The notes: a model not told the origin generated them from the letters alone. Counted from the first letter of the stretch, positions 6,471-62,187 are shown. The stretch: 64,000 nt of DNA from Marsupella aquatica (GCA_973895155.1 OZ316897.1:15809375-15873374), one strand, 5' to 3'. Numbers and translations are program-made.

Positions 6471-9400
6471 ATAAATATAATTAGTTTTGCTAGGGTCTTA
6501 CAGCAGGGGGTCTTATAGTTGAGGGAGTGATGGGTGAGTTGCAGTGGGGTTCATATATTATCTAAGTCTGAGGCAGCTAGGATTAAGTTTTGGGTTGGTT
6601 AGTATGATTGAGGACTTTGGATCATTGGCAGGTTTGGTAAATAAATTGGGGTTGTGGTTGTTTGTGCAGGTTTGGGTTGAAGGCCAGGGCTTGTAGACGG
6701 GCAGAGTGTGACTTTAGGGCTTTGTGTGTTTAGTTATTAGTAGGATTGGGTCTCAAAACTACAATTTGAAGCCGTTTCACCACCTACTGAGCATCATAAA
6801 ATGTTTGTTTTTGTGGGTTGTGCGTCACGGGATTCTACATCGTGGTGTAGGAGCTAAAAGGGGGTCCATTAAATTTGCTACATGCAAGGCGTCATTCTAC
6901 TTTCAGTTGTCTGAGTCAAGGTTTTAGTTTTAGGATTCTGGTTGCGGGTCTTGTTGTGTTAGTGTTTTCAGATCCCGGGTATGCACCTCACCTTTAAGGG
7001 AATTATTAAATTGCCTAATGAGAAGGGAATTACTGTACAAGGGGGTTCCAATTATTACATTGCCTAATGGAAAGGGAAGTTGAGACTTTGGGTTAGAGAG
7101 GGGGTTTAGAGTTAGTATGTTTTGAGGTGGAATATGTGTTTGAGGTTCTGGGTTGGATGGGGTACCATTGTGAATGGATAGTTTGGGGGTTAATTATATG
7201 GGTTGGATAGGGTTCCAGGTACTTGAAGGCTTGGGTTGTGGGTTGGATGGGTTAATTTTCAAGTGGAAGGCTTGAGGGTTGTATACTCAATAGCTAGGTT
7301 TGTGTGTGTAAGCTTTAATTGGGAGAGGCGGTTTGGCAGTTTTGGGTTTGATAAATTATTGGGTTAGATTCATTTGTGAGTGGTGGGTTATGTAGAGAGT
7401 TTAGTCTTTGATATCAAAACTACAGACGTCCACATTCGATGGAGAAATCATGTGGTTAAATTTCAGAAAGTAGGATGTTTGGATCTCAATTGTAATTATT
7501 TTGTGATAGACCTCCGGGTAGACCAACTATTAGCCTAAGTAAGTCATAATTTGAACCTCCGAGTTGATTCTGAAGTGTAATAAATTCCAAATTCAGATTT
7601 TGTAGCTATACTTAACTAGTACCATGGCCTCACTGCATATAATTTGTACTCACCAAGGTTTTACTTACAAAGCATGCCTGGGTACTCAGGCGAGTAGACT
7701 CAACCAATCAAGCAGATTGGTCATAAGTTCCAGTTAAGTTCAGAGTCAACTTACTTCTAGATGACAGGGCAAACATTTGTATTAATAGCAAGCCCTGGGC
7801 AATTATTCACTCAAGTTTTTCAAGCTTGCAAATTAAGCATGGGTATTCAAGCCAGTAGGTAGACTCAAACAATGAGGCATATATAACCCCTACCAGTTCC
7901 TACTCCAAAGTTAAAACATTGGTTTAAATTTCTTTTTGGCTAAGCCAAAACAAGGTTGAAAATACTCGGATAGCTGTCAGTAATGCGAGGTAAAGCACAA
8001 ACTGGCCCCTAGATGTGAACCAAGAGTCTGAAGCTGACATGACTAAAAGACAAAACTGCCAAACATGTTCCATGATATATGAATATTCTATTTTGATCAT
8101 GCACGTTGAGGCTCAATTCTGCCAAGTTCCTCCAAATCTGGGAGACTATAACTGGGAATATTATCCATAGGATTAGTTATAATTGGCTTACTTACTTGTC
8201 AACTAATTGTAAAAATAAACCCAAAAGGCACCCTTACATTAAATGGTTCTCACGTCTTACGCAAGGAGTGACCGGCTACTTTCTCATGCATGTACACATG
8301 TGGTTAGGTAGCCAATTTATAGAAATATAGTGGGATCAACTCTACATACTAAATTCATTTACTAAATTTTGTGCTAGATTTAATGAAATTAATGACCAGC
8401 CATTATAGTATGGCCCAAATTTAGCCAGATTTTGGTATCATATATTCTATAGTAGTCGGAGTCTAATTTAAGTCCCAGACAGATTGATTTTATGGGAACA
8501 CTTGTTCTTTTGCTGCTTTGCTCACGGCAGCAGCAACTTTCAGCCTTTGGGATCATGAATGTATCCTTGTTCTGGCGTTGCTGTCGTTTTGGCAGTGCTT
8601 TCTAATTTCAGCTTGATCAGATAAAAATTTGGAAGGTATAAAAGCCTAATTATGTTCATTGGTCTGCCTGCTTTAGCGTCTTTCCTTCTACAACGAAGAC
8701 AATACTCCAGCTTTTAAACTTAAAGGTATTGTCTCACTTTGTTACTGTACACAAATCATTCCTCCAGTAAATCTGTGTCAACCTACTCTAGCTGAAGACA
8801 CGTAAGTCTATCTATATGCCCTCAAAAGCAGTGTCCAAGTGTTGCTTTCTCTACAGAAGAATGTCGATCTAGTTAATTAGTGGGTACGTAGCTAGCTGGG
8901 CTGTAGAGGTCCTAGCTTACTATAGCTACTGCAAGTTGGCCAGGTGTGCAGCCTCATGATCAATCCAGATGGGGATCCAGCCCATTGGCGAGTTTGAGGG
9001 ATAATATGTGAAGATATCAGACTCCTTTAATTTCTATATTATCCCGGAAGTCCTAACGCAGATCAATTCTTCATTGTGGACTCACATGATCGATAAGTGT
9101 GGTGACTCTTGATGATAGAAGATTTGGACATCCATAACATTTTCAGATTATCATGTTGGAGAGTAAGCCAGGTATGATTACAATGACCAAATTATCCCAG
9201 ACACTCATTCTCTTAAAGCCTAACTCAATCAGATCGACCAACTCAGGACCATATATACTAATACTGAATATTTCCTGGGAAATCTAATACTCAATCCTTA
9301 ATCTTGAAAAATTTCTTAAAAAAAGTTCAGCTTAAGAAAGTAACATCTGAATTAGTTTGGTAGATTCGCCTTTCAGTTGAATTGTATCTTCAAGCACAAA

Positions 9401-10444
9401 AACTTGTTCTAATTAACTCAATTAATTGTACAACTGCTAGCTATTGCGCTGAGTCTCCATTCTAACTTTTCCTGTCCATAATGTCTATAAATTAACCTGT
9501 TTTGCAAATAAAAAAAATTTAAAAAAAAAGACTTTGTCGTATATAGCTTGTGTAAGTCATCACCCCCTAAAATTAGTTTGGGTGTATTGATAATTCTATA
9601 TTTGAACTGATTGACATGAACCTTTTCAGTTACTTTAGTTTAATACTACGTGCTAACCTTGTTTATAGCTTGACTAATCGAACATGACCCATCTGGAATA
9701 AGTTTTTCTTGAAGATCTAAATGATTGCTCTTAAGTAAATTGTCTCATATTTATCTTTTGGCTCCCATGGATTTAGGATGGGACGTACAAGGTTTGTTTT
9801 GGTCTTTACTTGAAATCTTATTCATAATGAAATAAATAAAAATCACTCAATTTAGAAAAGAAAAGTGCAACTTGTAACGGCCCACAACTAGTAGGTCAAT
9901 ACACAAAATGGAAGGGAGCCATAGGTGACAAAAGACCATCGTAGGGAATAATAGGAGTTATGGTGCTAATATACATTCTCACCTACCTGCAGGCACGCGC
10001 CAGCACGCTCCAGCAGTACCAGCCAACAAGACTACGTTCCGCCATCCATTGGCCACCCAGAGTAACTTGCACGTAGTAGACTGCTTTAATGTATGAATAA
10101 AAGACATCACGCAGCCACTCCTGTCCAGGTTGATGTCAGAATTTGATTCTTTCCTACTTCCCTCGCATCATTTATGTGCAGTTATTTATCAGTTGATGAT
10201 TTGGATTTTCTGGCAGTTTATTGAGCTACTCAATTGCATTTTTCATTATGATATGTATTCTAAGGGCATCAATTATGCCTGGGAGCGCTAAGGTACGTGC
10301 ATTATGTGCTAAACAATAAGGAATGACCATCGTAGCTTCAGTTGGTATTCTCATGATTTACTAGCCTTGCAATACTAGTGCCAGAATGATGTTCAGTTTG
10401 TGCAAAGCCTATACATTCCTGTTTATTGTAGCTTGTAAGTACGT

Positions 10445-22249: not shown

Positions 22250-23009
22250 CTTTCTCTGAAGAAAGCTCCTTTCCAATTGCCACAAATTAAATCGATGATG
22301 ATCATGCAACTTCCGGAGCTGCCACAGGCTCGATCATACACCAGGAATGAACTTTGGGGTCGTAAACCTCCTTTCCACGAACTGGTTCCCTATTCAAATG
22401 ACCCCCAGAAACATAAATCTTCCCATCTACGATATTAACATCAAAATCTTGTCTGGCTTCTGTCATATTTGCACATTGCTTCCATTTCCTCCGTCCTGCC
22501 AAATCGAGCATATATGTAGTATTGAAGCTTTTGGCATAATTCTTCATTCTGTACGACGGTGCTCCTCCCAATATGTATATTCTGCAATCCATCGAAACGC
22601 ATTGGCAGTGAACTGGGAATCCTTGGGGAAGACCAGGAATTGGAGGAAGCCTAAACCAAGCATTATCTTTCATCGACAATTCTAGAAAAATTTCGATCTT
22701 AGTGCTAACATCCCGGGCGAAAACAGCATGCGTGTTTACAGATTGAGTGCGGACTCTCGCATCGTGAACTAGGTCACCTTGAATTGCCTTTTCCCAACCC
22801 CGACTTAGGGAATGTAGGGTCGGAATGTCGGTCCAAAAAAGTTTTGGAGTAATCATGTTCAGGGTGATGCCATTGGGGATGCCTGGTAAAAGTTCTTCCT
22901 CGAGGTCGTTAGAACTCAGTGGTGGCACCACTGTCAACCTCTCTACGGTCAACCTCCCTACTGAGACAAACTTTCCGCTCCGCAGCTTCATATTGCTGCA
23001 AACAGTCAA
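22250..23009 (-). pseudogene. F-box/Kelch-repeat protein, intronless, probably frameshifted at the 3' end
   Basis: F-box LLPGIPNGITLNMITPKL...LSRGW. Kelch repeats RIYILGG...WKQCANMTEAR and GKIYVSGG...EVYDPKVHSW. The ORF stops after about two Kelch repeats, and Kelch-like VAIGKEL residues continue beyond the stops. Confidence 0.7.
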
Positions 23010-55745: not shown

Positions 55746-56339
55746 CAGGCAAGCCTCAACATATCTGAAGAGCCATTGTTTGCTAGAACATTAACTTGAA
55801 AGTCCTGTAGTTCTCACTTCATTGATCGAGCACCTCGTCAAGCACACCGGGTCCACCCTGAGTGCAGCTGTCATTAATACAAAAATCTTGGCATAATTAG
55901 GCTAGGAATTTACCTACCAAGGAAGTAGTGGGGTAGACACCAAGAAAGGATCCGGACAGAGAAGTCCACCACCGCTAAGCTAGCGGGCTGCTAAGACAAG
56001 GCTTACAATGACATGTGTTTAATTTGACTATGGGGCGCATGCAGGCGCTTTTGGGAAGTCCCCTTCTGCCCTTGGACCTCGCCTTGGATAAACTGCTAGG
56101 GCCCTCCGGTCCCACCCCACCCGCCATGAATGAAGTTTGTTCCACATGATGAGACTGATGCTTCAGTGCAGATTAGACCAATAGTAAAGTACTAAGTCTA
56201 TATATCACGCCGGACCTACCCAGGGACCTACTACTGAAGGGAACGTACCTTGCCGAAACTTGAGCACCGGCCACTCTAACTCATGGAGTATGCTACTCCC
56301 ACTGCAGTACACTGTCCACCACTATTGGTAAGTGTTAGT

Positions 56340-56860
56340 AACAATATACATAGCCCTTCAAATGTTACATCTCACATAAAATAGTGTGACTCACATTAAT
56401 TACGTCAGTCTAATTATTACAATTCACATGAAGTCACACATAATTTGGTGTCACTGATTGAGGTGTTAGCCTGGAATATTGCACACCGAGAATCAAGGCA
56501 TGAAACTGAGTCCCAAGAGCACTCTCAATACAAAGTAAAGTGTGTGACCTAAGATACTTAATTAGAGTGATTCAGGCTAGACAAAAATGTTCACACAATT
56601 TAGTGTGAGTCAGTCTAATTTTGGTGTCACACTAATTGTGTACCGGGCCCCTGACCAAAGAGGTTTGGTCACAAATTAAAGCTTAACTGTAATTTTGGTG
56701 TCACACTAATTATGTACCAGGCCCATGACCAAAGAGGTTTGGTCACAAAAGCAACCAAAGAGGTTACTTTGATCACAAACTTAAGTGTAATTTTGGTGTG
56801 TAATTTTGGTGTGACACTAATTATGTACTAAACGGGCGACCAAAGAGATTTGGTAACAAA
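56340..56860. repeat. Direct and inverted short repeats (AATTTTGGTGTCACACTAATT; GACCAAAGAGGTTTGGTCAC), TE-subterminal-like
   Basis: Direct inspection. Confidence 0.6.
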
Positions 56861-57088
56861 AGCTGAACTGTTGCAAGTGTTGCAAGTGCCTCTCTTGCTT
56901 AGTGTACACACTCTGACATGTTAACATATTTTGTAGAATCATATGCCCAGAATAGTATAGTGAGAGAATCATGTGCCGAATAGGATGCAAAGAATCATTA
57001 TGAGCAGAAAAAAGATTGGATTTGGAGGCATTTTGGGGCCCCCACCACGAAGCCAAACTGATCCGCAAGTTCAGCCAATAAGCACGCT

Positions 57089-57168
57089 ATCTACGATGTA
57101 CAGTGTAGATCTACGATGTACAGTGTAGATCTACGATGTACAGTGTAGATCTACGATGTACAGTGTAG
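57089..57168. repeat. Four perfect 20-bp tandem repeats (ATCTACGATGTACAGTGTAG)
   Basis: Exact copies at 57089, 57109, 57129 and 57149. Confidence 0.95.
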
Positions 57169-57419
57169 TTATATGGCTTGTTTGGGAGTTCTTTGTCTTG
57201 GAAGGCTTTGTGTCTTTCCTGGTGCCCGCTCCCATGGTGGTTGGTTTGGCACTTCTCACCTTCGGTCCCCTCGGTCCCCCTGTTGCTGCGCTTCGGGCCA
57301 CCTGTTTGTATCGTTCAAGGCAAAAACTACTTTCGTCAAGCCTACGCGCTCTGATTCTACTTCTTATTTTCGTTGTTCATTGTCACTGAATCAGCTTCGA
57401 AAATGAATTAGCTTCAACA

Positions 57420-59420
57420 ATGAACTGTTGCACGGTACGTGCTAAGGAGCACTGGTTTGCTCCTTTGTCGACTCGTCGTCATCCTCGCCGACCTCCTCGA
57501 CCTTCAATTTTCTGTACGAAGCTTGCTGATCGTTCTCGAACAGCTAGAGTGAGGCTGCTGTCCCGATTTCAAGGAATGGGAGCTGTCGAGGAAACGCGTT
57601 TTAGCAAAAACATGATGTCTACACCGGTAACTGCAACTTTACCCAAAGATCTCAAGGTTCTGCTGCTCAGCGACGCCAACAATTGTATGACGCAAAAGAC
57701 TTGGCTGGAGTTGACAGAACTCGGCATCGAAGTCTACACGCACTTCTACACCAATGCCAACGCCATGATCCTTGCAGTCCACGCCATAAAGCCCGACCTG
57801 ATTGTTTGCCCATTTCTGACAAAGCGCATCCCGGCTGAAATCTACAAGAACAAGGCTGTCCCGTGCCTGATAGTTCACCCTGGACCAGAAGGCGATCGGG
57901 GAATGTCGTCCCTCGACTGGGCGGTGATGAATGGCGAGCAGTCGTGGGGAGTCACACTTCTGCAGGCAGAGGAAGACATGGACGCCGGTGCGATCTGGAG
58001 CACTCACAACTTCGCCATCGACAAAATTGATCTTCCGACCAAGTCCGGTCTGTATCGGAGGGACTGTATTGAAGCAGCCATGAAAGGACTTCACGATGTC
58101 TTGGCCATGGTCGCCGGGGGCAATCCCCAACCGCGTCAGCTCGATTACACAAATCCTAACGTCAAAGGGCGGTTGCAGCCACGTATGCTGCAGGCCGATC
58201 GAGAAATCGACTGGACTTTGCCTGCAGCTGATATCGCCCAAATCGTTCGAGCAGCTGACTCCCAGCCCGGGGTTCTGGACTCCATTTGCGGCAATAAATA
58301 CCTTCTCTTCGGAGCTCACGTTGAGGCCAATCCACCCATGACTGGATCTTCACCGTCTTCGTCACCAACCAAGTCTCTGCTGGCCAAACGGCACGGCGCG
58401 GTCCTCATCTCTTGCGGCACAAATGGGCAAGAAGCGCTGTGGATTACTCATCTCAGAAAGCCCAACGCGGGTGAACGTCGCCACATCAAGCTCCCGGCTA
58501 CAGCAGTTCTGCCATCCAAGGTAGTGGAGTACCTGCCGGAATTGCCCGAGCCAAGTTTACTGTTGCCTTTTGGCAAACTGCCCAAGACATTTCAGGAAAT
58601 CTTCGTATGGGAGAAGAGCAAAGTCTGCTACCTGTGGTTCGATTTCTACAACGGTGCTATGAACACGGAGCAGTGCGCTCGTCTTGCCGTCACTTTGGAG
58701 AGCATCAAAAAGTCGACCAGAGCACATGTCTTGGTGCTAATGGGAGGAAGAAACTTCTTCAGCAATGGGATCAATCTCAATTCAATTGAAGCAGCTCCTG
58801 ATGCTTTCGAGGAGTCGTGGCAGAACATCAACAGCATGAATGATTTCGTAAAGGAGGTGCTGACGGCCTCTGACTTCCTGACCGTTTCTGTGTTCGGTGG
58901 AAATGCTGGGGCCGGTGGGGTAATGGCAGCTCTCGCCGCTGACGAGGTATGGACGACTGGAAACACCATCCTCAACCCCCACTACAAATCTATGGGGCTC
59001 TACGGGTCGGAGTATTGGACATACACCTTGCCGAAGAGAGTGGGTTCCAAAAAGGCTGCGGAGCTGACCGGAAACTCTATTCCCATCTCGGGAACCACCG
59101 CTCTTCAGATCGGCCTGGTCGATCTTGTCTACAAGGGCCGCTCCGGACCCAGTCATTTCCAAAAGTGGGTTGTTGAGCGCGCAGAAGCAATTGCGAATGA
59201 CCCTACAGTGCGGCAAAAAATCATTGAAAAGAAAACTAAATTCGACAACGAAGTTTTCAGAAGTAAAATACAGGAATGTCGTGATTTTGAGCTGAAACAA
59301 ATGCAAAAAAGTTTTGCAAGTCAGGAATACAACACCAATCGGCATGCGTTTGTCTTCAAAATCAGCACGGGCACCTCATGCCTCCCAAGTCGCTGTATTG
59401 TAGAAAAACAGACACGGTAA
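57420..59420 (+). CDS. hypX: HypX/HoxX-family protein (N10-formyl-THF formyltransferase plus enoyl-CoA hydratase/isomerase domain) with N-terminal extension, intronless
   Basis: KVLLLSDANNCMTQKTWLEL...PDLIVCPFL..RIP...LIVHPGPEGDRGMSSLDW...WGVTLLQAEEDMDAGAIWS, then FDFYNGAM..EQC.RL...FSNGINLN.IEAA...GNAGAGG...LNPHYKSMGLYGSEYWTYTLPKRVG. These are the characteristic HypX motifs, in an uninterrupted 666-aa ORF. Confidence 0.93.
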   Translation: MNCCTVRAKEHWFAPLSTRRHPRRPPRPSIFCTKLADRSRTARVRLLSRFQGMGAVEETRFSKNMMSTPVTATLPKDLKVLLLSDANNCMTQKTWLELTELGIEVYTHFYTNANAMILAVHAIKPDLIVCPFLTKRIPAEIYKNKAVPCLIVHPGPEGDRGMSSLDWAVMNGEQSWGVTLLQAEEDMDAGAIWSTHNFAIDKIDLPTKSGLYRRDCIEAAMKGLHDVLAMVAGGNPQPRQLDYTNPNVKGRLQPRMLQADREIDWTLPAADIAQIVRAADSQPGVLDSICGNKYLLFGAHVEANPPMTGSSPSSSPTKSLLAKRHGAVLISCGTNGQEALWITHLRKPNAGERRHIKLPATAVLPSKVVEYLPELPEPSLLLPFGKLPKTFQEIFVWEKSKVCYLWFDFYNGAMNTEQCARLAVTLESIKKSTRAHVLVLMGGRNFFSNGINLNSIEAAPDAFEESWQNINSMNDFVKEVLTASDFLTVSVFGGNAGAGGVMAALAADEVWTTGNTILNPHYKSMGLYGSEYWTYTLPKRVGSKKAAELTGNSIPISGTTALQIGLVDLVYKGRSGPSHFQKWVVERAEAIANDPTVRQKIIEKKTKFDNEVFRSKIQECRDFELKQMQKSFASQEYNTNRHAFVFKISTGTSCLPSRCIVEKQTR

Positions 59421-59724
59421 TCGAGCCATGCATTATTAATTAGGAGCTTCTGAATCTTCAGTATGTAATTTGTCCGACACAAAATGGCCCTATTTATTTT
59501 CATTGAAGATCTTGGGCTGCTTTGTTGGCTGGAAAGTACGTAGAGAAGGTGGAAAAGGGTTTGATCCTTGGGTAGCGAGCCAGTAATGGAGCCTTTTCCA
59601 TGTGTTTCAAAATTTTCTACAGCATTCACCATTGAAATGCAAAGGCGGACGAATGGGAATTATTTTGCCTATCAAGTCTGCGATTGTACCTTTTGGCTAT
59701 ATACTATGAATGGCGGCGCTTTGA

Positions 59725-59768
59725 ATCTGCTGTAGACAAACTTTGATCAGACTTTGTCTACAGCAGAT
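59725..59768. repeat. Perfect 16-bp inverted repeat
   Basis: ATCTGCTGTAGACAAA-12 nt-TTTGTCTACAGCAGAT. Confidence 0.9.
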
Positions 59769-60789
59769 GTCTAGAATCGTAAAAGTCATCACTAAGATCG
59801 GCTATAAATGCTAGGTTCCTCTTCACTACCGTCTGTACAACGCTAGGTTCCCAAGCTCTGATTTTGGACAAATCATGACGAGTATTCTTTGTTTGGAATA
59901 TAAAACTGTGAATCAAAATCGTTCGACATATTTTAGCTCACACTAGATGACGCACTCCAAATGTCGTCAATTTCACATGGATTGGATCTGCAGCGAGTTC
60001 AAGCTTTGATACAACTGTCAATGATGCCCGCAATGATAAGGCATTTGAAATTCAACCAGGGCTGAGATCTGGTCTTTACCACTTTTCTGTTTGCTGACCT
60101 CGAGGTCTGCATAACAATCTCAGACTTTGGTCGTGTTTTCTTTTTAGACTGCTTGTCCTATGACTGTTTTGGGTAGCTGTGGTCAATCCCGCTCTGGACA
60201 TTTGATTCATTCATAAACAAAACTTAGGCCGGCGTCAAGCAATGTGTGCCACTTTGGTCTAAGATATACTTCAGTTCGGCCTTATACTTCAGTTCTTTCC
60301 CTCAAATAGTTTTGGTTACTGTGAATGATTTACCACTTGCTCGTTATCACTCGGAGTAACAATTAAATAATGTGCAGTGCAGATTTTCCTCTACTGTAGG
60401 CCGTGAGACATAGCCAGCCCTGGACGTAGTCTGAAAAACATGTTATGGTTGCATTCCAGACATGGCCAAGAGGATTCCGCAAATAGTCGAGCAAGGCAAA
60501 ACGATTGAGCCTACGAGCCCGCATGTGAGTGCCCCTACATTTTCCGGCCCTCAACCTACGCACTGCAGCATTTAAGTGAGCGTGAGATGGATGCTTGAAC
60601 CCACTTCCCTGCCAGGCTTTGCAGCACAGGATGTGGACTTCCAAGGGCAAGGGCCCTAAATTTTTCTGCCCTTTTGAGGTCCAGACCTTTGATTTCTCAA
60701 TACCAAAGCAGTCAAATCTGATGTTCCTGTCAAACTCAATCACCAGGTGTGTCAAATGCTCTGCTTATTTTAATAGTAAAATACAGATT

Positions 60790-61190
60790 TTATGAAACCA
60801 TACTCGTCCGAAATCACCTTAAATGTGTCTTTGTCTTCAAGTATGAAAATACACACGTCAGAAAGGGAATCTTGTGGGGCATGAGAAACTTTTTGTATTT
60901 TTGCAACCTCAAATGTGTCTTTTTCTTCAAGTATAAAAATCACTATGAAACGATACTCATCTGAAATCCCTTAGATGTGTCTTTTCTTCAAGTGTGAAAA
61001 ATACACACGTCAGAAGTAGAATCTTGTGGGCCATGATAAACTTTTTGGATTTTTGCAACCTCAAATGTGTTTTTTCCTTCAAGTATAAAAATCACCAGTC
61101 CTCAAATGTGTCTTTTTCTTCAAGTATGAAAATACACACGTTAGAAAGAGAATCTTGTAGGGCATGCGAGACTTTTTGGATTTTTGTATA
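60790..61190. repeat. Tandem subterminal-like repeats (aaatgtgtctttttcttcaagtatgaaaatacacacgtcagaaag...)
   Basis: About three copies of a 130-150-bp unit downstream of the DUF7869-type ORF. Confidence 0.75.
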
Positions 61191-62187
61191 GAGTATGAGT
61201 ATGAGACTCTAGAAGGAAGGAAAATGGGTTAATTTTTGCTTTTCACTCCCTCCTTTGTCCTTCTCTGTATGTAATTGTGCAATTTTCTGTTTATTTAATG
61301 GTGCCAAGGTAAGAAAAGGAGGGAGGAATGGAATGGCAACGGAGTGAAGAAATAGGAAAAAGGGAGAGAGAAAGTGTTTAAATGTTCCCCTCCCAATAGT
61401 ATTGTGCAACTGCAATTTGTTTTACTTTTTGTAGAAAAATGGTCCCAATTTTTGTTATTCCATCTAAACCTCCAATTACATTCATTCTGAAAACTTTCAA
61501 AGAATGTATCTTTAATGAAAGCTAATAAGATCAGGCTCCTAACAGTTTTTCCTCCACAAGATCTGTCTTGCTTGACATGCCCCCTCATCCCTATTATCAC
61601 TATATTCATTAAAACTGAAATTATAAAGGATATAGGGAAATTTGGCAATTTAAAAACAGAGTTTTAGGCATGAAAATTGTAAATTTGGAAGATGAAAAAT
61701 GAAAATTCAAGCATCATTAAATGTAAATTTGGGGACAAAAAAATGAAATTTTGGGAAAGTAAAATATTAAATTGGATGATATTAAAAAACATTTGGGTGA
61801 TAAAAGTGTTCATTTGGTTGGAAAATAGATAGAATCTAGTAATAGCATATAAGCTTGGATAGCATCTATATTCAAAACATTTAGCTTGAGTAAGATATCT
61901 AACTAAGCACCAATACAATGGAATGACTATACTGTCTAGACAAAGTTAACTAGGATGATATCCAACCTACTAGAAGGAATGAAATGGCATCATTTTCTAG
62001 AATTAAAATATACTAAGACAAATAAAATAATAATTATAAGAAAGTCCATTCAATAACTTTGAGAGATCATAGAGTATTAATTTGATTGTCTTGTTCTCTC
62101 ACTTTAGACAAACGCATGGAAATCAACTCGACCCTCTTAATCACAAGTCATTTGAGTGGAGACTTGTAACCTACGAGTTCTATCAAT

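Follow-up and report, generated by a model that had tools for sequence, protein, structure and literature searches.

A HypX-like gene in the nuclear genome of a leafy liverwort and its eukaryotic relatives

The HypX-like gene and the DNA around it

A 64,000-nucleotide stretch of the genome of the liverwort Marsupella aquatica (GCA_973895155.1, OZ316897.1:15809375-15873374; hereafter the window, with positions counted from its first letter) contains an uninterrupted open reading frame (ORF) at 57420..59420 on the plus strand. It has an ATG start and 666 codons plus a stop, and the encoded protein belongs to the HypX family. Bacterial HypX, also called HoxX, is the aerobic synthase of the carbon monoxide (CO) ligand in [NiFe]-hydrogenase maturation. 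The Pfam domains of the liverwort protein are Formyl_trans_N, Formyl_trans_C, and ECH_1, and its closest solved structure is HypX of Aquifex aeolicus (PDB 6J0P), which matches query residues 77-645 with an E value of 1e-110 in a phmmer search against the PDB. NCBIfam returns only formyltransferase and enoyl-CoA hydratase matches, all of them sub-threshold, so the protein is without a curated equivalog model. The features of the ORF are given below. Alignment A1, to which they refer, comprises liverwort, moss, Chara, tardigrade, placozoan, fly, and bacterial sequences, and near-invariant columns are the 92 positions conserved in at least 95% of 179 other family members.

57420..59420, plus strand: complete HypX-like ORF (Pfam, PDB match, 91/92 near-invariant residues present)
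57420..57647, plus strand: N-terminal extension, residues 1-76, basic and resembling a transit peptide or presequence (A1, leader composition)
57648..58469, plus strand: formyltransferase module, residues 77-350, Formyl_trans_N and Formyl_trans_C (Pfam, PDB alignment, Foldseek against 6j0p)
57876..57878, plus strand: codon of His153, equivalent to A. aeolicus HypX His74 of the triad (invariant column in A1)
57894..57896, plus strand: codon of Asp159, equivalent to Asp80 of the triad (PDB alignment, A1)
57981..57983, plus strand: codon of Asp188, equivalent to Asp109 of the triad (PDB alignment, A1)
58572..59369, plus strand: module with the crotonase/enoyl-CoA hydratase fold, residues 385-650 (Pfam ECH_1, E 1.5e-17; PDB alignment; Foldseek)
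58983..58985, plus strand: codon of Tyr522, equivalent to Tyr416, a candidate decarbonylase base (PDB alignment, A1)
59010..59012, plus strand: codon of Glu531, equivalent to Glu426, a candidate decarbonylase base (PDB alignment, A1)

An AlphaFold2 model computed from a 12-sequence alignment has a mean predicted local distance difference test (pLDDT) score of 77 and is confident across residues 69-650. Compared with 6J0P in Foldseek, it gives a target-normalised template modelling (TM) score of 0.93 and a root-mean-square deviation of 2.4-2.7 Å over ~580 columns. The original prediction of an intact, intronless 666-residue HypX/HoxX homolog is therefore confirmed by the uninterrupted ORF, the Pfam and PDB matches, and the predicted fold, and the motifs it had named are all found (HPGP at residue 153, EEDMDAG at 184, NPHY at 519, and GSEYW at 529). 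By analogy with the bacterial enzyme, the module at residues 77-350 is assigned to 10-formyl-tetrahydrofolate (10-formyl-THF) binding and formyl transfer, and the module at residues 385-650 is proposed to bind coenzyme A (CoA) and act as a formyl-CoA decarbonylase.

In A. aeolicus HypX, His74, Asp80, and Asp109 form the formyl-transfer triad, the decarbonylation of formyl-CoA involves Tyr416 and Glu426, and CoA is a bound prosthetic group (PMC6802093). The liverwort residues His153, Asp159, Asp188, Tyr522, and Glu531 match the catalytic residues defined for the HypX proteins of A. aeolicus and Ralstonia eutropha (PMC6802093), and all five are invariant throughout A1, which bears out the earlier claim of an intact homolog. 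The CoA contacts considered were Gln15, Arg131, Ser194, Gln195, Asn306, and Arg542, together with Arg9, in A. aeolicus numbering. Read off the PDB alignment, Gln92, Arg213, Ser281, Gln282, and Asn411 are present in the liverwort protein, and Lys647, just past the end of the alignment, is probably the counterpart of Arg542. Arg9 is replaced by Ala86, at a position that is also variable among the bacterial members of A1. The protein matches 91 of the 92 near-invariant columns, which is also the family median, and its sole departure, alanine to serine at residue 472, is common to the protein of the leafy liverwort Calypogeia. On these sequence grounds the gene is not decaying and is under selective constraint.

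The DNA around the gene is that of a liverwort. The top database match of the protein is from Calypogeia fissa (78% identical) and is encoded on a 3.5-Mb contig, while an unrelated Kelch-repeat ORF of the window at 22305-23009 on the minus strand matches Calypogeia proteins almost exclusively. Copia and gypsy elements, a DUF7869 transposon ORF, and Kelch and GT34 gene fragments surround the gene, as expected from its earlier description as lying among plant transposons and plant genes. Public contigs from three studies contain the locus, the third study having the ORF only. Contigs of runs X1-X3, from two of the studies, tile 55772-61129, the gene and its single-copy flanks being equal in depth, and one contig (57139-57740), free of differences, runs from the upstream flank into the start of the ORF. 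Signs of a contaminant or a chimeric assembly, which the original prediction had raised as the threat to its reading, were looked for, and no evidence in support of either was found. The Calypogeia-like Kelch gene, the plant-type transposons, the tiled flanks of matching depth with the bridging contig, and the ortholog on the long Calypogeia contig make this explanation extremely unlikely. The gene is real and belongs to the nuclear genome of a leafy liverwort with Calypogeia among its relatives.

The ORF is richer in GC than its flanks (0.52 against 0.42-0.43), as had been noted before, with a GC content at third codon positions of 0.58-0.60. Other coding-like stretches of the window are equally GC-rich (0.52-0.58), so the GC content of the ORF is not a signature of foreign DNA, and it was discarded as evidence that the gene came from elsewhere. 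Neither the higher GC content nor the absence of introns sets the gene apart from the other coding sequence of this genome.

In all runs, contig depth at 56585-56781 and 61116-61500 is ~10-50 times that of the neighbouring DNA. These high-copy repeats bracket a single-copy island of ~4 kb with the HypX-like gene.

A form of the gene that is ~2-3% divergent is seen in runs X1, X3, and X5 (57717-59305). Run X3 covers 57717-57860 with two alternatives, one contig free of differences and one with 7, each at single-copy depth, and a ~2% divergent contig spans 57831-59305 at ~2x flank depth. In run X5, which belongs to the third study, the ORF is ~3% divergent. The divergent form is probably a paralog; among the contig pieces listed, the divergent contigs appear not to reach into the flanks. 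The gene could in that case be a young paralog drifting toward a pseudogene, intact only since the duplication is recent. This explanation draws on the ~2% divergent second form at similar contig depth and on the differences listed between the window and other copies or alleles, 12 of 19 of which are non-synonymous and 7 synonymous, in a partial list that mixes paralogs, alleles, and samples. Constraint that was relaxed once the gene had recently been duplicated may account for the excess. On the other hand, the ORF has no stop codon and no frameshift, and the near-invariant residues are retained with the single departure that Calypogeia also has. We consider drift toward a pseudogene highly improbable.

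The N-terminal leader has no counterpart in the bacterial HypX proteins of A1. Its composition is basic, with 17 arginine or lysine residues against 5 aspartate or glutamate residues in the first 79, and in the AlphaFold2 model pLDDT is below 50 over residues 1-68, with a single helix at residues 32-52. Candidate in-frame starts are Met 1, 53, and 65 or 66. The moss, Chara, and window proteins, as predicted, carry extensions of 79-112 residues that are basic and mutually unrelated in sequence, and Trichoplax and Hypsibius have shorter presequence-like extensions. Such a pattern resembles that of organellar targeting peptides, and the transit-peptide-like character of the putative leader makes mitochondria or plastids the probable site at which the protein works. 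Directly after codon 5, the sequence GTACGT at 57435-57440 looks like a 5' splice donor, and its use as one would mean that the leader is not translated as read. One further feature lies upstream of the ORF.

57090..57419, plus strand: single-copy upstream region with a 20-bp tandem repeat in four copies (57090-57169) and then a CT-rich stretch (sequence; contig depth about that of the gene)

The repeat sits ~250 bp upstream of the ORF, and the region may be a promoter or a 5' untranslated region.

Placement among eukaryotic and bacterial HypX proteins

Databases already hold a eukaryotic clade of such proteins, under the names "HoxX-like" or "uncharacterized protein", to which the liverwort protein adds one more member. 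The match list includes Ceratodon (KC19_9G128500), Physcomitrium patens (XP_024383899/A9TPZ2; cluster P0002), two paralogs of Chara braunii (among them CBR_g23882), the tardigrade Hypsibius, the placozoan Trichoplax, and the fly Bradysia, and a further homolog is found in Euglena mutabilis (cluster P0026). The liverwort protein is an ortholog or paralog of these proteins, with the same domains, and most of them have N-terminal extensions. HypX proteins with a C-terminal FolD domain pair have been found in a brown alga, a dinoflagellate, and EukProt transcriptomes. The ESM Atlas lists HoxX-like clusters from Cnidaria, along with a large cluster from Ascomycota, and the trees described below leave these out. 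We found no published function for the eukaryotic HoxX-like proteins and no paper on eukaryotic HypX, and the main text of a survey of horizontal gene transfer in moss does not list the gene (PMC3493653).

The bacterial comparison set comprised the 80 named hypX loci from GTDB genomes nearest to the query. Two trees were calculated, one with FastTree (180 rows) and one with IQ-TREE under LG+C20 with posterior mean site frequencies (74 rows, quick search), and both are drawn with a midpoint root only and are in effect unrooted. In both trees a branch with 100% support places all named eukaryotes and all named bacteria on opposite sides (16 named eukaryotes against 25 named bacteria, the eukaryotic side also having sequences that are not assigned to an organism). 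The window protein and its Calypogeia relative form a pair with support of 100, and the pair groups with Chara and the mosses, including Physcomitrium, in a streptophyte clade with support of 90-92 (92 in the Shimodaira-Hasegawa-like approximate likelihood ratio test). The formyltransferase motif reads HPGPEGD in the liverwort pair, HPGIEGD in other eukaryotes, and HPGIKGD in the Bacillota and proteobacteria of A1.

The liverwort protein resembles the bacterial HypX/HoxX proteins of A. aeolicus (6J0P), Cupriavidus necator/R. eutropha, and Rhizobium leguminosarum in its formyltransferase N and C domains and crotonase fold. The likeness to bacterial HypX extends to the TM score, all five proposed catalytic residues, most CoA contacts, and 37-47% identity. 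Unlike the bacterial genes, the liverwort gene is a eukaryotic nuclear gene with a putative 76-residue leader, and it belongs to a separate clade in which every named member is a eukaryote.

The original prediction also held that the gene was acquired horizontally from bacteria, possibly via fungi. Such a recent acquisition by this plant lineage would fit a family that is best known from bacteria and is patchily spread among eukaryotes, as well as the lack of introns and the GC content above that of the flanks. It does not fit the grouping of the liverwort pair with mosses and Chara on the eukaryotic side of the 100% branch. Also, the best bacterial identities are 43-47%, against 48-49% for the moss and animal members of A1, 45% for Chara, and 78% for Calypogeia. 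The eukaryote-type leaders and a GC content like that of the other coding-like sequence in the window argue against it as well, and there is very little chance, in our view, that it is correct. Horizontal acquisition by this plant from a bacterial or fungal donor is not supported.

Among the best 120 matches there is no sequence from vascular plants or Marchantia. The streptophyte grouping is the pattern expected from vertical descent since the streptophyte ancestor, with later loss in the lineages without a match. From the trees, vertical inheritance of the plant gene appears to go back at least as far as the ancestor that Chara shares with land plants. The eukaryotic clade as a whole may still have a very old bacterial origin. 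For annotation, the lesson is that bryophyte genes that look bacterial, lack introns, and are richer in GC than their flanks need to be placed in a tree before they are labelled as recent horizontal transfers.

Relationships within the eukaryotic clade differ from those of the species, a pattern suggestive of transfers among eukaryotes, contamination in some data sets, or many losses. Hypsibius (P0020) is sister to the P0026 cluster with the Euglena mutabilis transcript (cluster member P0290).

Possible function of the eukaryotic enzyme

Based on these observations, we consider it likely that the window holds a constrained liverwort nuclear gene for a bifunctional HypX-type enzyme with a putative organelle-type leader, which is part of a hydrogenase-independent, eukaryote-wide clade and was inherited vertically in plants. 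If the liverwort protein works as bacterial HypX does, its N-terminal module would transfer formyl from 10-formyl-THF to enzyme-bound CoA, and the C-terminal crotonase-fold module would decarbonylate the resulting formyl-CoA to CO, regenerating THF and CoA. The enzyme would then be an organelle-targeted, hydrogenase-independent converter of 10-formyl-THF to CO and THF. Its physiological role may be to produce CO as a signal or to recycle THF by disposing of excess one-carbon units. Formyl disposal of the kind carried out by PurU or ALDH1L would involve the same chemistry as the signalling role, and the two are not separable here. By analogy, a stand-alone role in CO production or one-carbon overflow is reasonable. 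CO formation via formyl-CoA has been demonstrated biochemically for the Ralstonia enzyme, according to a 2025 review (PMC12134894), and it is from bacterial HypX that the chemistry of CO release by the liverwort protein is inferred.

The clade takes in streptophyte algae, mosses, liverworts, placozoans, tardigrades, sciarid flies, and euglenids, with FolD fusions in brown algae and dinoflagellates. We know of no [NiFe]-hydrogenase in land plants. The original prediction had reported no hyp or hydrogenase genes in the window, and this holds for the part scanned: no hyp gene is found among 10 ORFs of at least 200 residues in the 64-kb window, the remaining and smaller ORFs having been left unscanned. 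In this the liverwort protein is unlike bacterial HypX as a hydrogenase maturation factor, as no hyp or hydrogenase partner lies among the scanned ORFs.

FolD is the methylene-THF dehydrogenase/cyclohydrolase, and it is fused C-terminally to HypX in two separate parts of the tree. On the eukaryotic side, the fused members (P0029, P0038, P0039, P0043, P0051, P0056, and P0103) are basal in the clade. On the bacterial side, the fused members (P0080, P0089, P0091, P0098, P0099, P0110, and P0113) lack a leader and stand among Bacillota-like sequences. These positions in the tree suggest two or more independent origins of the HypX-FolD fusion. FolD makes 10-formyl-THF, and the recurrent fusion therefore ties the enzyme to the one-carbon pool.

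The FolD fusions fit any role that consumes formyl-THF, and they can be read in a second way, in which eukaryotes have retained the HypX fold for other work. The protein would then be a 10-formyl-THF deformylase or hydrolase, or it would handle formyl-CoA, with CO at most a by-product. In the formyl-CoA variant, it would dispose of or salvage formyl-CoA from oxalyl-CoA decarboxylase or 2-hydroxyacyl-CoA lyase. That land plants have no hydrogenase client is established knowledge and agrees with such a change of function, as does the relationship of the N-terminal domain to the hydrolase domain of 10-formyl-THF dehydrogenase. The hydrolase domain of ALDH1L1/2 and the PurU deformylases share with the liverwort protein the substrate 10-formyl-THF, a related fold, His/Asp catalysis, and the regeneration of THF; they differ in that CO2 or formate is released and in that there is no crotonase-fold CoA module. 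Similarity to proteins of the 10-formyl-THF dehydrogenase/deformylase type is confined to residues 117-336 (E 1e-11 to 1e-14). Loss of the decarbonylase step would remove the need for Tyr522 and Glu531, so the invariance of these residues and of the CoA contacts in all eukaryotic members examined counts against another function. The binding of CoA as a prosthetic group in HypX (PMC6802093) further argues against free formyl-CoA as a substrate. Another function is, on balance, an unlikely explanation, although one that deserves some weight.

Several points weigh against a CO-forming, vertically inherited, organellar enzyme. We know of no client for CO in any plant. Biochemical proof of CO formation is limited to bacterial HypX, and no public run that matches the locus is on record as RNA, so that expression of the gene is something we infer. 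The Calypogeia gene model starts at about residue 60 and is therefore without the leader. The excess of non-synonymous differences described above belongs here too, as do two properties of the trees: the split counts named sequences, and a midpoint-drawn, unrooted tree does not say which side is ancestral.

Among enzymes, heme oxygenase is the principal accepted producer of CO in plants and animals. Its likeness to the liverwort protein is functional only, the shared product being CO, hypothetical here, and its fold, its substrate heme, and its chemistry are unrelated. A catalytically intact HypX clade in eukaryotes that lack [NiFe]-hydrogenase suggests a second route to CO, from folate one-carbon metabolism, and plants and animals may thus have a source of CO that does not use heme. 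If true, eukaryotes would have another enzyme besides heme oxygenase that makes CO, present in bryophytes, Chara, and several animal and protist lineages.

Bacterial hypX neighbourhoods

The genes around bacterial hypX bear on the same question. Bacterial hypX often lies outside hyp clusters: hypD, hypE, or hypF occurs within 8 kb of it in only 24 of the 80 nearest loci, as in Clostridium polyendosporum, where the order is hypF, hypD, a Ni/Co transporter gene, hypE, and hypX. Twenty of the 80 loci have a gene for an MHYT-domain protein at most 889 bp from hypX (at most 500 bp in 18 of them), and none of these 20 has hypD, hypE, or hypF within 8 kb. They are listed here.

MHYT-adjacent loci: L003, L006, L013, L014, L019, L026, L031, L038, L043, L046
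MHYT-adjacent loci, continued: L048, L050, L052, L056, L058, L065, L066, L070, L074, L077

In most of them the MHYT gene is positioned at ~8001-9700, and its product is a stand-alone MHYT protein, an MHYT-PAS-GAF histidine kinase, or an MHYT-PAS-GGDEF-EAL protein. The hosts are Nocardia, Kitasatospora/Streptomyces, Cellvibrionaceae, Methylococcaceae, a cyanobacterium, and Peribacillus. The MHYT domain is a putative copper-dependent sensor of CO, NO, or O2, and the MHYT domain of CoxC responds to CO in a copper-dependent manner, in a study that does not mention HypX (PMC11347149). In the library searched, no paper pairing HypX with MHYT was found. In a search of eukaryotes for MHYT proteins, the matches listed were filled by bacterial ones.

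Judged by gene order, hydrogenase-independent HypX also occurs in bacteria, beside MHYT sensor genes, and the hypX-MHYT arrangement looks like a conserved pair of CO-producer and CO-sensor genes across four phyla. Such a producer-sensor module makes a signalling role of HypX-made CO plausible, and says nothing directly about plants. It is an independent reason to think that CO made by HypX can be a signal. We tentatively put forward the wider proposal, possible but rather doubtful at present, that HypX-type enzymes are dedicated heme-independent CO synthases whose product is a signal as well as a hydrogenase ligand, with a two-gene module that includes a copper-dependent MHYT CO sensor in many bacteria and an organelle-targeted descendant in eukaryotes that uses the folate one-carbon pool. 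The larger interest of the liverwort locus lies in this question about the whole HypX family, more than in the locus itself.

A different arrangement is seen in Solirubrobacterales, where hypX is followed directly by the gene of a GGDEF-EAL protein (L041:9776-12019, L042, L063:9200-11989, and L073). The N-terminal 250-420 residues of these GGDEF-EAL proteins give no Pfam match at E 1e-4 and none with the MHYT profile, and this region may be a different sensor domain.

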